Assembly (NCBI GenBank): GCA_020891255.1
Contig: BQFW01000002.1
Span: forward strand, 1,426,001 to 1,490,000
From: Entomortierella parvispora E1425
Taxonomy: Eukaryota; Fungi; Mortierellomycota
Direction of reading: 5' to 3'
DNA length: 64,000 nt
Positions 9,884-18,717 of the stretch are shown here, piece after piece. How positions within the stretch are numbered: position 1 is the first letter of the stretch; the number at the start of each line of letters is the position of its first letter. The notes beneath the pieces are model-generated. The model worked only from the letters and a program-made list of their open reading frames with translations, made no database searches and was not told where the DNA came from. The position numbers and the translations under genes were made by a program.

Positions 9884-12001
9884 ATGGCCAACTCGAGCAA
9901 TAGCTCGCGCTCTAGCTCGCCCAGTGTTGCGAGTGAAAAGGCACGCTGCACAGTCTTCCGCAAGGAATACGAATATGGTAATGAATGAAACATTTCTTTC
10001 GAATGACATGTAAAATAAATGCCAAATGCAGCACCCTTTCACATTGAATGAGCAAGGCGCTTACACTAGCACGACAACTGTTGTATTGTGCCTGTTTTCT
10101 TAGCCAAAGTGAAAAACAACTTTGCAAAGCCGTCGTCCAAGCCCGCCCTTTCTGATACCCGCCCAGTCAACATGCTTGCGCTGTTGATCAAGCAACGCGA
10201 GGAAGAAAAGGCTCGAGAGGATGACGGGCCTACCCTTGCCACCGTCATGACTGAAGACAACAAAGAGAATGTGTAAGTGGATGGGAAACATATAAACGGT
10301 GGTCCAACATGACGAGAAGAATGGATGATATCTTCAGCGAGAACATGATAACTTAGCATCCCTATTTTTTTATTTCTTATTTTTTATTTTTATTTTTTTA
10401 AAAAAAATAGTGACACGATCCAGACCGTCCGGAAAGAGCGTGTGTTTGAACAGGACGTGACAGAAAAGGAAATGGATATCATCCAGCAGCGCATTGCCTT
10501 CCAGCAACGCCAATTTGCTGCCTTTGAGGAAAAGGAGAAGCTGAGACGTTACAGGAAGCTGAAGCAGCATTACGGATACCTGGTCGAGGCCGAGATTGAT
10601 GAAGCCTTGGAGGACTGTGCCAATGATGAAGACGATGTCTTTGTTCAGTTCAGTACCCGCGGTTATCTGGAAAAGATTAGAAGGACCATCGCTATCCGGA
10701 ACCATAAGCCGGCCAAGGTCACCGTCATGGATGATCAACAGCGGGCTCGATATGAGGAGCATTTGAAGAAGCGAAGAGAAGCTCCACGCATGCGCACCAC
10801 CGAGACTATGAAAAAGTAAGAAATTGCCCCCTAATACTTTGGCACAATTGAAAGACCTTTCTCGTTCCTTTGTGACTAACGAGCTATATTTGTTCCGCCT
10901 AGACAATACCGTATGGGTGGTCGTTTGGGCCTGGACGAGGCTTTGAAGCAGGTTCAGGAAAACAAGGTCGATGCCTCCAAGGCCTTTGAGGGCTGGTCCG
11001 ATGCCCGTGTGAAGGCGTACGCGGCCATTGACAAGAAGCCCAACACTTATTATTACCGCTTCAACGCTCCTGGCGAGGTCCAACGCAAGGGTGCCTGGAC
11101 CAAGGATGAACAAAAGCTTTTCCATGAGCGTTTGAACGAAATTGGGGCTAATGGTCAATGGGGTTTGTTTTCCATGACCATCCCTGGACGTGTCGGCTAC
11201 CAATGCTCGAATTACTACCGATTGTTGGTCGAGACCAACCAGATCAACGATCCCAACTACGTTTTGGACGAGAAGGGCAAGGCTCACTATCTGTTCGATA
11301 AGAAGGGCGCCAACGGAGAGACCACCAAGGAGTTCCGAACCCACAACAAACACAACACGACCGGCGAGGAAAGACCCGTTGTTGTCAAGGCGCCCAAGGA
11401 ACCCAAGCCTCCCAAGGAGCCTAAGCCTCCCAAGGTACCCAAAGCACCCAAGGAACCTAAACCTCCCAAGCCAGTCAAGGAGCCCAAGACATCCGTCGCA
11501 GCCAGTCGCAAAAAGAGAAAAAGACGTGGAGGATACAACAGCGACGATTCTTCGGATATCTCTGAATTTGATTGTGATGACTCTGGATCGTACATGGCGA
11601 AATGGAGCACGACCAAACGAACAAGGGCTCGTGTCGCTGCAGCGGAGGGATCGACTTCTGCGGCTGGCGCTGCTGCTGCTACTGCCGGCTCGGGTGGATC
11701 AGGATCAGGATCCGTTGCTGGCGGTAGCGATGAAGAGGAATACGAATCCGAGAATGAGATTGATGCCATGAACCCACTGCCTGGCTTTATTGACCCTATC
11801 ACTTTGGAGGTGGTGGAGAAGCCTGCCATCTCCAAGTATGGCCATGTCATGGGCTACGACAGTTGGATTCGCTGTCTGTTGCAGGAGGGCTCGACCAAGA
11901 ACATTTGTCCATTGACCAAGAAACCTCTCACCAAGCGCGATGTCACTGTGCTCACTTTTGAAAACATTGAGGAATACAGGGACAAGATTGTCAACATGTA
12001 A
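9884..12001 (+). CDS. Four-exon protein with a UBA/CUE-like helical segment, a Myb/SANT domain, Lys/Pro repeats and a C-terminal U-box-like domain
   Basis: The ORF pieces 9884-, 10088-, 10442- and 10913- are joined through GTAA donors. Myb: RKGAWTKDEQKLFHERLNEIGANGQWGLFSMTIPGRVGYQCSNYYR. U-box-like: LPGFIDPITLEVVEKPAISKYGHVMGYDSWIRCL...CPLTKKPL. Confidence 0.75.
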
Positions 12002-13560: not shown

Positions 13561-14939
13561 ATGGCTCTCCTTGCACGCGTCATGAAGAGCATGGAGCGCA
13601 TTGCTCCCCAGAGTCTGGCCGAACATGCCTGGGACAATGTTGGACTTCTTGTCGGTAACGACCTTCATACATGACGTTCCTGGGGGAAAGAACTCGACTC
13701 GGTCTTTTTCACGCTTTATCGCAGTTATCTAACCTTGCAAATCACCTTTGTAATTCTTGTTATTCAGAGGCCCCTTATCCTCGCACAAGAGTCGCTTCCA
13801 ACACTCCTCAGCGCGTCTTCTTGACCATTGACTTTACTACCGCCGTTGTCGATGAGGCCCTCAACGATCCATCCGTTGGAGTGATCATCGCGTACCGTAC
13901 GTAAAAAATGAAACGCTATCGACACCTCTTTGATGAAAACCGGTCTTGCTGATACTTTTGTATGAATGCCCAATAGATCCACCCATCTTCCGTGGACTCA
14001 AGCGCTTGCAATTGAAGGATACAAAACAAAGGATGGTTCTGCAGTGTGCGGCCAAGGGTGTCAGCGTGTTTTCGCCTCACACTTCCTGCGACTCTTGCGA
14101 TGATGGAGGTAAGTGGGAGGATAGTGTAATGCCTCTAATCCTTATAATTGCGGTGGATCATGGTTGTTCAATGAAACTAACATTAAGGTCCTTTTTCAAA
14201 CAGTGAACGATTGGCTTCTGAAGGGCTTTGGAAAGGCTGGAAGCATCAAGACATATGTTCCTGCTGCTGATCCACCAGAAGGTAGGCATTGAGAGAGAGG
14301 CATTTTACCTTCAACTGCCCTGATTGAGAGCATGCAGGAGTTCTGAAGTTCCGATGGATCTCGCAAGCCTCTTGCTAATGCAATATTGATATCATAAAAA
14401 AACAGGCCATCCTTCCTCTGGCAAGGGGCGTATGTTTACTTTTGACAAGCCTCAACCCGTTCAGGAAGTCATTGATCAGATCAAGCGTCATTTGGGCATG
14501 ACCCAGGGTAAGCTTGAGCGCTCTACGCCGTTTCTTGCTGATCGTCATTGAGGTTACTGTTTTCTTTAGTCGCGCTTGTTCTAATCCACTGTTTCGTACT
14601 CTGTACCATTTTTTCCCTTTAGTTCGTGGAGCGATTCATCCTACACATGCCAACAATGAGCGACTTATCTCGACTGTCGGCGTTTGGGCTGGCTCAGGAT
14701 CCGAAATGATGGGCCACCCAGCAGACCTCTACCTGACGGGTGAGCTTGGTCATCACGATGTTCTCGAGGCATTGGAACGACAGAGCACGGTGATCCTCTG
14801 CGAACACTCCAACACAGAGCGTGGCTACTTGAGGGATATCCTCAAGGGCAAGTTGGAAAGCATGTTGTCCGAGGATGGTGGTGAACCTGTCGAGGTGATT
14901 GTCAGCACGACAGACAAGGATCCTTTGGTGATTGTCTAA
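13561..14939 (+). CDS. NIF3: NIF3 family protein (GTP cyclohydrolase I type 2 / NIF3L1-like), multi-exon
   Basis: APQSLAEHAWDNVGLLV, LTIDFT..VV.EA, HPPIFRGLK, FSPHTSCD, YLTGELGHHDVL, CEHSNTERGYL. Confidence 0.95.
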
Positions 14940-15321
14940 AATGGTATCCTTCTTTTAGACTGCAAGATGATCCCCATTACCATGTTGACGTGTTGCTGAC
15001 ATCAAGAAAAAAAAATAAAACTGGCAATCCTTTTCCAATCATAAGGTGCAGATAAACTGATGGAGCTGATCCTCCCTCTATGCATTGGGGTTGGATCTCG
15101 TATGGCAACCCCGGCTTTCACTAAAGCAAGCTCACTGGGCATTCATATCTTCGTCAAGGGACTGGCAGGTAATGGTGAAGGTCAAGAATTTATTCGCTAT
15201 CACCAGTCAAAATATACATTAAAATAGTACAAGTAGGAGTTGGAGAAAAGGTAAGGAGTAAAATAAGGCAGAGAATCAATCCTCCTTCCTCTCCGTGGAG
15301 CGACTACGTTCGTCAAGTAAC

Positions 15322-15690
15322 TTAGACAACAGCACCTCCACGACGACCAGCGCGACGACGGCCTCCGCAGCAGCAGCGGGTAAAGATCCACGCAATAATG
15401 AAGATAGCAGCAAGGACAACGAAGATGTGCTTGAGACCTGCGGTGTCACCGATGTGGACGACACCGGCCATGCCCAAGATCCAGATGATCAAAAGGATAA
15501 TACCGACGACAACAAGACCGTCCTATTTTTTTTTTTGTGTGTGATATGGAGATGGGCCAGTTAGTTTATGAAGAGAGTGCAAGAAGCAAAGGTCGATTGG
15601 GGCTGTGTGTGTGGGGGGGGGGGGGGGGGGGGGCGGATAGGATGCCAACAGCCAACATACCCAGGCAATGCATTCAATGGCGCCGCACAT
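15322..15690 (-). CDS. Spliced 76-aa two-TM membrane microprotein, lmo0937/DUF5670-like; absent from the ORF track
   Basis: Exon 1 15690-15661 (MCGAIECIAW), GTATGT donor, ACTAAC branch point, TAG acceptor at 15523, exon 2 15522-15322 (DGLVVVGIILLIIWILGMAGVVHIGDTAGLKHIFVVLAAIFIIAWIFTRCCCGGRRRAGRRGGAVV*). Confidence 0.85.
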
Positions 15691-16587
15691 GTTGTATTAT
15701 TTGTTGTTGTTAAGAGTGAAGGTAGGGGAAAAGGGAAGAAGAGATGATGAGAAGAGTAGATTAGGAATAATGAAAAGAAAGAGGAGATTGGCAGGGGGTT
15801 TTATAGTCGCCAAGAAAGTGAAAAAAATAGAGCTGAGTCCTCGTTGTCCTCCATCACCACACGGTCATTTCTTCAGGTACAGATATTAAGGAGAAAAAAG
15901 TACGAGAGCAAACGAAAAGGAACAGGGCCAGGGCGCTCAATAATGAATAGACGTCCGCCCAATCAAAAGAGCACCGCGCTCGGTCATTACCACCACACTT
16001 CAATTGCCATTACGCTCAGCCGTCTGGGCCCTCTCCACTTGTCCAAGTAGTTTGGCCAATTACGCTCATTCTTGCAGTACGTAAGGAGGGAAAGAAAAGA
16101 TGGAAACAACAACAACGATGACGGCTGTAAGTCATAATGGTGATGATGACCGATCCGGATCTCATTCTGGTGCATACCGTCAGATCAGGAAGGACAAAAG
16201 TGGAGGCGTACGTTCCTGCAGTGCACGGAAAAGAGAAAAGACACAGTTTGTTTGCATTTAGCTCATCCAGTCTTTGCTCTTTTTTTGTCCAGCTGCCCCA
16301 GCAGTACAGGTCGTCATAGTGATTGTTCACACTCTCCCCGCACAAACAGGTTCTTGATATTAACCTTCTTTCCTCTTGACTTCATAAACCCATCGCTGTT
16401 TTCCTCTCCAGAGAAGCTACTTTGCGCCAAGGACGGCAGTTGGTTCCATGCAACCAATTCATGGGAAAACGAAGCAAAAAAAAAAAATCAAAAAAATTAC
16501 AAAATCAAATATCCTAAAATGAGGTCATCCTGACAGCAGCTGGACATTTTTGTTCCATTTAGAGTTGCGCCACAAGAGCAGGGCCCT

Positions 16588-18717
16588 TTATTGCAAACCA
16601 CTATCCATCGAGGATGCCCCTTCGTTGTCGACCCCTGTGGATGGCTCGTTTCCAGTGGCCACGTCAGTGTCGCTCCACCGTAGACCGTTGACATACCAAG
16701 CAAGCGCACCAGGAATTGACCAAAGTCGAATCGAGTTATCAATAGTGTCTTCTAAGGGCAGAGTTTCGACTGTCCTTGACGTGCTCGCATCTGTGGTTGC
16801 AAGATCAGACTCAGAGTCAGAGATGTCGCTATCGGATTCGGATTCGGAATCGAGGGCCAGCTCGTATTTACGCTGCCCAGAGCTGGTTGCAAGCAGGGTA
16901 CCACTAGGGTGGAATGTAGCAGTCGACACAACATCTATATGTACACGAGCGGTTAGAACGCAAGGGGGAGGGCTGATGCTCCATTGCTGACTTTTGTGTT
17001 TGAGTACATACCATCGTGTGCGTGGAAGCGCGCCGACAATCTATCCGCTTCAGAGTCTGCACGATTGGCCAAGTCAAAGAAAGAGACATCGCCATTCATA
17101 TCACCAGTAGAGAGCCAACGACCGTCGAATGATATGTCAAAGCTGATTCGCTGGTTGGTTTTCTCCCCTGGTCTTTCCAGTCGGTAAAGGACATTGGCGG
17201 TATTGCGAATATCCCAGCATCGAATATACGAATCCATCCTAGAGGCAGAGTATAGGTACAATCCGTCCGGTGAAAACTTCAGATCCGTTAATCCACCCAT
17301 TGGTGATGAGGCAGATTGTTGAGTGTTTGTTGACTGCCCTAGGTCACCAGTTTTTTTGTTAGGTCGGTGGCTCTTGTCCCGCAAGAGCATCAGCAGCTCA
17401 TTGGCTCTAGCATCGTATAGTCCTATAGTCTTCAGATATGATCCTGCTGCATAGAGATCGGAGTAATCTGGGTTGAAGGCAAGACAAGATATCACCCCTT
17501 TTTGACCCTTTTTACTCTTCCGCGTCGGTACTGTGGGGTGCTTCTCGTTATCCTTGCCTGGCCGGGATGTGTCAAAAATTTGAACCATATTGTTTGACCC
17601 GCAATAAATCCTAATGTGGAGAGTCAAAGGGTTTGCAGTTGTCAATTGATTTGTACTTCGCCTCATCCAATCCTCGTTCATTGCTCACTTACTTTGATCC
17701 GTCCAGGCTGAAGCAAATGGCAGTAGGGGCAACATTGACCTCACAGTGGTCAACTATAGTGTACGAGCATCTCAGCTTTGGCAGAAGAGTCAGCCTGGAA
17801 TATATCGGAAATTTCAAATCCAGAGAGGCACATATGTATCACGAACTTACTTCGCCAGTGAATGCATCCCAGAGATGAACAGGATGGTCCCTACTGGAGG
17901 ACAGCACGCAACATGTTGCAGGGTCCTGTCTTGACATCTGAGGATACCAGCACATGTCGTACACAACTTCACCTTCTCTGATCAACATGCCGGTCTCCAA
18001 TTGGGTATCTAGGCTCATTTATCGTCAATAGAATGGCATGAGTATACTGTAGGGTTAGTCGTTGAGTTGTCTTTTGACTTCACTCTTTACTTACCATCTG
18101 GGTTTACCGCCAGATCTGGACTAAAATAAGCAAGTGGAGATGATCAATCAGCCTAAGTATTGCTTCATTGCAAAATGTCATGGTCACCAGTCCCAGCTAA
18201 CTTACAGAGCAGTTATCCGTAAGCAGTTGTCGTTTGACGAGGAAAGAAGGCAGCTACCGTCTGGAGACCTGTTTTCGTAAACATGGAGATGTTAATCCAC
18301 CGAAATTCATTGTAATTGCTTGATTTTCCATTATCGGGGTCAAATCCTCTCGACAGATTACCATTTTGTAGCCTTGAAATAGTTGTTCTCGCGCCCATTA
18401 GTCATTTTGACCATGTCATCCCTAATCCCCATACGGAGCCTGCTTTCACCCACGGTCGAGTTGAAGGCAGACTTTGTAGAAAAGGATTTGACAATACCAT
18501 ATCGATCCTTGGAGCTGTCGAAAACACATTCGTAGGCTTGATAGGTTTGAGAAGTCCATGCCCCTGAGGACTCTGCTGCCTCCTGTGCTTGGTGAGGGGT
18601 CGCGGTGCTGTCATGGATCAGGTCAGACGCAACTTCCGTGTTGGTGGCGTTATCCTCGTACGACGGCACCGACACAGAGTCTGTGTCCATTTTGTCGAGA
18701 TGTATTGAGTCAACCAT
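16588..18717 (-). CDS. WRAP53: Telomerase Cajal body protein 1 (TCAB1/WRAP53, Swt21-like) WD40 protein, multi-exon
   Basis: NYFKATKWSPDGSCLLSSSND, SSRDHPVHLWDAFTGE, IFDTSRPG, KGQKGVISCLAF, TNQRISFDI, TATFHPSGTLLATSSGQR. Confidence 0.92.

Follow-up and report, generated by a model that had tools for sequence, protein, structure and literature searches.

A conserved two-exon microprotein gene of Entomortierella parvispora and its probable distant kinship with the bacterial lmo0937/DUF5670 hairpins

A short locus on the minus strand of Entomortierella parvispora E1425, at positions 15322-15690 of the window (the whole 64,000-nucleotide stretch of contig BQFW01000002.1 that was analyzed), is a genuine nuclear gene that is already annotated as EMPS_01323. 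Taken together, the evidence is very probably best explained by a real gene for a two-pass membrane hairpin, which belongs to a vertically inherited fungal family, is a distant homolog of the bacterial lmo0937/DUF5670 microproteins, and is proposed to act as a membrane-tuning proteolipid.

The gene has two coding exons, of 10 and 66 codons, which together specify a protein of 76 amino acids. Its features are the following, all on the minus strand.

15799..15805, minus: TATAAAA, read in the sequence 109 nt 5' of the ATG
15661..15690, minus: coding part of exon 1, 10 codons (MCGAIECIAW), with the ATG at 15690
15523..15660, minus: intron of 138 nt, phase 0
15660-15655, minus: donor GTATGT, read in the sequence
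15565-15560, minus: branch site ACTAAC, with the branch A 37 nt before the acceptor AG
15525-15523, minus: acceptor TAG, read in the sequence
15322..15522, minus: coding part of exon 2, 66 codons (15522-15325) and the stop codon (15324-15322)
15469..15519, minus: transmembrane (TM) helix 1, about residues 12-28, a hydrophobic stretch in the sequence (AF2 helix 3-28)
15379..15435, minus: TM helix 2, about residues 40-58 (AF2 helix 38-62)
15379..15513, minus: core aligned to the lmo0937/DUF5670 model, residues 14-58 on model positions 2-42 of 43
15367..15375, minus: Cys60-Cys61-Cys62, directly past TM2, candidate S-acylation sites
15325..15366, minus: basic tail, rich in Gly and Arg, with a hydrophobic Val-Val end; its G-R-R start aligns with the conserved bacterial G-R-R
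15189..15194, minus: AATAAA, read in the sequence about 128 nt past the stop, a likely polyadenylation signal

In a mechanical list of open reading frames, this gene appears only as two unrelated ORFs, and the first-pass annotation, made from the sequence alone, had presented it as a hidden spliced gene. The splicing it described is correct in donor, branch site, acceptor, and phase, and the same protein is deposited in GenBank as EMPS_01323 (76 aa), which starts with the ten residues of exon 1 and is 100% identical over exon 2; the gene is therefore not hidden from public annotation. Gene calling in the genome paper used AUGUSTUS with transcripts assembled from RNA-seq, on a line of E. parvispora that had been cured of its endobacterium (PMC8759367). 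A TATA-like box lies at a comparable distance from the ATG in two paralogs of the same genome (L002 and L003). The deposited identical protein, the conservation across many genera, and the purifying selection reported below place the gene model beyond chance. Within the intron, 21 consecutive C residues (15633-15613 on the minus strand, or G21 as read on the plus strand) precede a (CA)n repeat, the whole region spanning 15601-15633. The G-run may form a G-quadruplex, and the length of the homopolymer may be inexact, since the assembly is Nanopore based.

The helical hairpin that had been described is borne out by the two hydrophobic stretches of the sequence and by AF2, which, run on the family alignment, predicted the two helices listed above with moderate confidence (pLDDT 64.7). 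The CCC cluster and the Arg/Gly tail can both be read in exon 2. Cys2 and R59 are nearly invariant throughout the fungal family, while C60 and C61 are invariant or nearly so in Mortierellaceae and common elsewhere. In the aligned core, TM1 ends in W-I-L-G and, after the loop, TM2 starts with G-L-K-H-I-F-V-V-L-A.

Relatives of 68 to 76 aa were found in 11 Mortierellaceae of the genera Mortierella, Linnemannia, Dissophora, Haplosporangium, Gryganskiella, and Entomortierella, with 74 to 84% identity over the full length and 74 to 88% in local alignments of exon 2. The Mortierellaceae proteins align end to end and share 33 invariant columns. The E. parvispora genome itself has three further matches, one on contig 14 (L003) and a tandem pair on contig 5, which amounts to at least three full-length copies including EMPS_01323 and a partial match in the tandem pair. 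Both full-length paralogs share the phase-0 intron after W10, as does the M. alpina ortholog, which carries a second intron after K41. Comparison of EMPS_01323 with the contig 5 paralog and with M. alpina gave a dN/dS of about 0.06 to 0.07 with near-saturated dS (Nei-Gojobori method); the comparison with the contig 14 copy was left out, since an indel in the loop shifts the ungapped comparison. The genomic neighborhood is partly shared too: a WD40-repeat gene (16953-17681, minus strand) lies upstream of the microprotein gene in the same orientation, and a WD40 gene adjoins the M. alpina ortholog (L131) in the same arrangement. On the other side, the end of a NIF3/DUF34 gene (14514-14939, plus strand) is convergent with the microprotein gene.

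Some details of these loci are worth recording. About 1 kb downstream of L002, the tandem paralog on contig 5 (L004:1300-1612) seems, read by eye, to have an additional loop intron, GTAAAA...CACAAG, ahead of G-L-E-H. The contig 14 paralog is shorter in the loop, and its tail contains extra Cys and fewer Arg. Several family members look mis-spliced in public gene models (P0006, P0018, and P0021-P0028): the M. antarctica model lacks exon 1, and others read through the intron into unrelated tails or keep an intron-derived insert in the loop, suggesting that automated annotation often mishandles this small gene. Elsewhere in the window, an ORF of 362 aa (10913-12001, plus strand) matches a Myb-like DNA-binding domain exactly at the Pfam cutoff (24.4 bits) and a U-box just under it (20.2 versus 21.4 bits), a pairing that would be unusual.

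The family extends well outside Mortierellaceae. An exhaustive HMMER search with a Mortierellaceae profile retrieved 22 cluster representatives at an E value of ≤1e−3, including members in Mucoromycota (Umbelopsis ramanniana and Calcarisporiella thermophila) and Chytridiomycota (Geranomyces variabilis, Powellomyces hirtus, Fimicolochytrium jonesii, and Rhizophlyctis rosea). Identity to EMPS_01323 falls from 74 to 84% in Mortierellaceae to 61 to 63% in Mucoromycota and 35 to 51% in chytrids. All share an M-C start, an Asp before TM1, W-I-L, a His at the start of TM2, a Trp and an Arg at its end, a basic tail, and a C-terminal Val or Ile, usually together with Cys-Cys. None of the named fungal proteins carries a domain assignment. 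Intron placement was studied in three related loci by asking whether removal of a GT...AG segment reproduces the deposited protein: in the two chytrid genes examined (Powellomyces and Rhizophlyctis), the intron lies elsewhere, after residue 30, and the Umbelopsis gene has no intron. Judging from neighboring accession numbers, Geranomyces has two adjacent copies.

Two members come from metagenomes. P0029 is encoded on a rhizosphere contig beside a split HSP60 gene whose closest relatives of solved structure are mitochondrial HSP60s of fungi (436 and 431 bits, compared with about 313 for GroEL), and the contig is accordingly taken to be fungal. P0032, a member of 72 aa, was found on compact intron-free contigs (L006:3547-3765 and also L007 and L008), where its neighbors encode a D5_N/PriCT_2/DUF5906 primase-helicase and HMG-box, RING-finger, AAA, and MscL proteins; this gene set looks like that of a giant virus (Nucleocytoviricota) rather than that of a fungus.

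The first-pass annotation had recognized a resemblance to the bacterial lmo0937 proteins. The resemblance proved specific but distant, since EMPS_01323 itself falls under the cutoffs of both curated models. Against NF033488 it scored 16.9 bits, and exon 2 alone scored 17.4 bits (E = 0.0034), compared with a cutoff of 30; against PF18919 it scored 9.9 to 10.8 bits, compared with a gathering threshold of 23.5. Though below threshold, NF033488 was the top match of exon 2 and was spanned over its whole length. The same model was the top NCBIfam match for 19 of the 22 fungal members, with Umbelopsis reaching 26.7 bits (E = 4e−6), under the cutoff, and P0029 exceeding it at 34.5 bits. PF18919 was matched at an E value of ≤1 by 11 of the 22 (best E = 2.7e−6), and P0029 has a precomputed PF18919 assignment.

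To these searches we can add profile-profile comparisons with bacterial sequences fetched by a degenerate DNA pattern for W-L-L-G...I-H-x-L-L-V-x-A, which left 118 of 124 translated ORFs, typically of 47 to 50 aa. The 40 bacterial members tested all passed NF033488, with control scores of about 65 bits. As the retrieval pattern fixes residues, this sample is biased, which sharpens those columns and limits the tree described below. Alignment of the fungal and bacterial families with hhalign gave a probability of 95.5% (E = 1.4e−8) over 43 columns, and with all 118 bacterial sequences, a probability of 96.2% (P = 2.2e−9; score of 46.1) over 54 columns. The score of 46.1 was about 15 standard deviations above 150 column shuffles (11.1 ± 2.3; maximum, 19.1), far above reversed alignments (13 to 14), and about 7 standard deviations above 100 shuffles that kept each column inside its own segment, be it TM1, loop, TM2, or tail (13.6 ± 4.7; maximum, 27.4). 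The match thus runs across the whole hairpin and exceeds controls matched in composition and in architecture. W-I-L-G, G-L-K-H-I-F-V-V-L-A, and G-G-R-R-R fall in aligned columns, although the retrieval pattern dictated several of the bacterial ones. When the search was turned around, the fungal profile, run against 5.8 billion proteins, recovered the fungal family down to an E value of 7e−12 and then only PF18919 proteins (27 of 27; E = 3e−3 to 0.09), with no intermediates between the two groups. Other searches contributed little: the NF033488 profile had no match in the E. parvispora genome or in control genomes, the model being very short; a phmmer-type search with P0029 found only P0029 itself; tblastn of P0029 against plasmids found no match, probably because of the low-complexity filter; and the ESM Atlas search gave no usable match.

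Both groups are two-helix hairpins in which TM1 ends in W-[IL]-L-G, a short Gly-containing loop follows, and TM2 starts with G-x-x-H-[IL]-[FL]-x-V-x-A and is followed by G-R-R. In size and makeup they differ, since EMPS_01323 is a eukaryotic, intron-bearing protein of 76 aa extended at both ends, whereas the bacterial proteins have about 47 to 50 aa, start with M-L-W-T, and have neither cysteines nor introns. Compared with them, the fungal proteins are extended at the N terminus by 10 residues, Cys2 among them, have longer helices (about 4 more residues in TM2) and a loop longer by about 3 residues, and carry in addition a CC(C) cluster, a longer polybasic tail, and a C-terminal Val or Ile. 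Cysteines at the N terminus and next to the membrane, a longer basic tail, and introns had been regarded from the outset as gains relative to bacteria, and the bacterial proteins indeed lack all of them. On the sequence comparisons, the relation is specific and most likely homologous, at the level of a superfamily rather than of a family. This view is drawn from the match in register, the shuffled controls, and the reverse search, with which the curated models, independent of the retrieval pattern, agree. The fungal genes represent a eukaryotic version, with added features, of a bacterial microprotein family already known.

Two other families of small membrane proteins were considered. Pmp3/RCI2/YqaE proteins (UPF0057, PF01679) are two-TM hairpins of about 55 to 75 aa that occur in bacteria, in fungi, and in plants, are frequently multicopy, and have a link to membrane stress. 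PF01679 was absent from the Pfam matches of EMPS_01323 at an E value of ≤10 and from the best 25 of 26 Pfam matches of the whole family, and the motifs differ, so that membership was rejected: Pmp3/RCI2 is the best functional analogy for EMPS_01323 and not a homolog. UPF0391/YtjA (DUF1328; PRK13682) is likewise a small bacterial two-TM protein, and one source labels P0032 as such. PRK13682 matched 3 of the 22 members weakly (best E = 2.5e−4), far under its cutoff (21 versus 83 bits), and did not match EMPS_01323; with all matches far below threshold and lmo0937 the consistent best match, this identity was also rejected.

A maximum-likelihood tree with 22 sequences from fungi and 40 from bacteria (72 columns, with the biased bacterial sample) separated fungi from bacteria by a single long branch (support, 100/98) of about 2.3 changes per site. 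Mortierellomycota were monophyletic (97/94), Mortierellomycota and Mucoromycota grouped together (92/93, which is under the strict support threshold of the tool), and the chytrids fell outside this group. Sequences of Burkholderiales were nowhere near the fungi. With only 72 columns and a biased bacterial sample, the tree cannot name a donor. The tree broadly follows the fungal phylogeny, and the family is vertically inherited in the early-diverging fungi (Mortierellomycota, Mucoromycota, and Chytridiomycota). How it came to be there is a separate matter, for which an ancient transfer into an early fungus and a deeper common descent are both possible.

These results bear on several other explanations. 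That the gene model is a prediction artifact from which no protein is made has a negligible probability, given a conservation that crosses phyla, a dN/dS of about 0.07, a kept intron position, the synteny, the TATA and AATAAA signals, and an annotation built with transcript hints. Convergence deserves more weight: membrane physics could favor the same interface residues in unrelated short hairpins, namely, Trp and Gly at one helix end, His at the other, and basic residues after TM2. The aligned core is short, with some 43 to 54 mostly hydrophobic columns, EMPS_01323 is below threshold for both curated models, nothing lies between the fungal matches (E ≤ 7e−12) and the bacterial ones (E ≥ 3e−3), and other two-TM families (PRK13682/YtjA and FliO) match weakly too. 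However, the match is in register along all 43 model positions and stands well clear even of the shuffles that keep the architecture, a fungal member passes a curated cutoff, and the next-best matches are all DUF5670 rather than a mixture of hydrophobic proteins, which makes convergence unlikely. A recent acquisition from the Burkholderiaceae-related endobacteria of Mortierellaceae (Mycoavidus), the origin first suggested for this gene, is extremely improbable. The host strain does carry Mycoavidus (PMC8759367), and many Burkholderiales encode lmo0937-family proteins (Duganella, Massilia, Janthinobacterium, and Rhodoferax). Yet the fungi form one clade on a long branch, apart from every sampled bacterium, Burkholderiales included; chytrids and Mucoromycota have the same family with the same eukaryote-type additions; intron sites differ by lineage; synonymous sites are saturated even between paralogs; and the sequenced line had been cured of the bacterium. 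The tree, the range across phyla, the lineage-specific introns, and the shared additions together rule out a recent gift of the Mycoavidus kind, in favor of the vertical descent described above.

The protein may be placed in the membrane from its charges. By the positive-inside rule and with its Arg-rich tail, both termini would be cytosolic and the short loop would lie outside the cell or in a lumen. Cysteines directly past a TM helix are classic substrates of DHHC S-acyltransferases, for which the E. parvispora genome has about 10 loci, and palmitoylation of the candidate juxtamembrane cysteines is plausible from their position. These cysteines would be S-acylated by DHHC enzymes and, together with the basic tail, would press the end of the hairpin against an acidic cytosolic leaflet. 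A Val at the C terminus is known to assist export from the endoplasmic reticulum. The invariant W-I-L-G facing G-x-x-H suggests a fixed interface between helices or within an oligomer, which would be the part inherited from the bacterial core, and the protein would act, probably in oligomeric form or in partnership with a larger membrane protein. By analogy with Pmp3/RCI2, it could be a small proteolipid that responds to membrane stress or tunes the membrane. The only functional hints come from Listeria, where lmo0937 is strongly sigma-B dependent (54-fold; PMC2813243 and PMC7690807) and is bound by the small RNA Rli51 (PMC11394854), and it is because of them that the membrane-stress proteolipid is favored. 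The MCG start resembles the N terminus of plant ERF-VII proteins. An oxygen-sensing N-degron was considered on this basis and set aside as unsupported speculation, since a search of the whole genome gave no PCO/ADO match (PCO_ADO, PF07847); the genome does have the arginyltransferase ATE1 (PF04377), on contigs 14 and 7.

The main alternative to the proteolipid role is that the hairpin serves one larger membrane machine, such as a P-type ATPase, a transporter, or a channel, as its dedicated small regulatory subunit, in the manner of other micropeptide regulators. The very high conservation of interfacial residues (D11, W24-I-L, H42, W55, and R59) and the strong selection would fit a fixed protein partner, and the several paralogs could serve paralogous partners. 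Against this, there is no conserved functional neighbor or fusion, the neighbors being the WD40 and NIF3 genes, and we regard the subunit role as possible but doubtful. A bolder and quite improbable reading makes the lmo0937/DUF5670 hairpin a cross-domain oligomeric unit, conducting protons or ions or sensing pH at the outer membrane interface; the W-x-L-G and G-x-x-H faces would build this unit, and an early fungus would have gained it from bacteria before the split between chytrids and mucoromycetes, with control by S-acylation and the polybasic tail coming later. Were it true, the fungal genes would be a handle on the function of a widespread bacterial stress microprotein.

The annotation lmo0937/DUF5670 is among the commonest for bacterial microproteins (sORFdb preprint), and DUF5670 had no mention in the literature searched. 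The present result is a modest advance in annotation and evolution rather than in mechanism. It shows that a bacterial-looking gene in a fungus hosting endobacteria need not be a recent transfer. A eukaryotic branch that is conserved, multicopy, strongly constrained, and equipped with additions of the lipidation type shows that what the hairpin core does is general enough to serve in both bacterial and eukaryotic membranes, and genetically tractable fungi, such as Mortierella alpina, offer a route to the role of this core.
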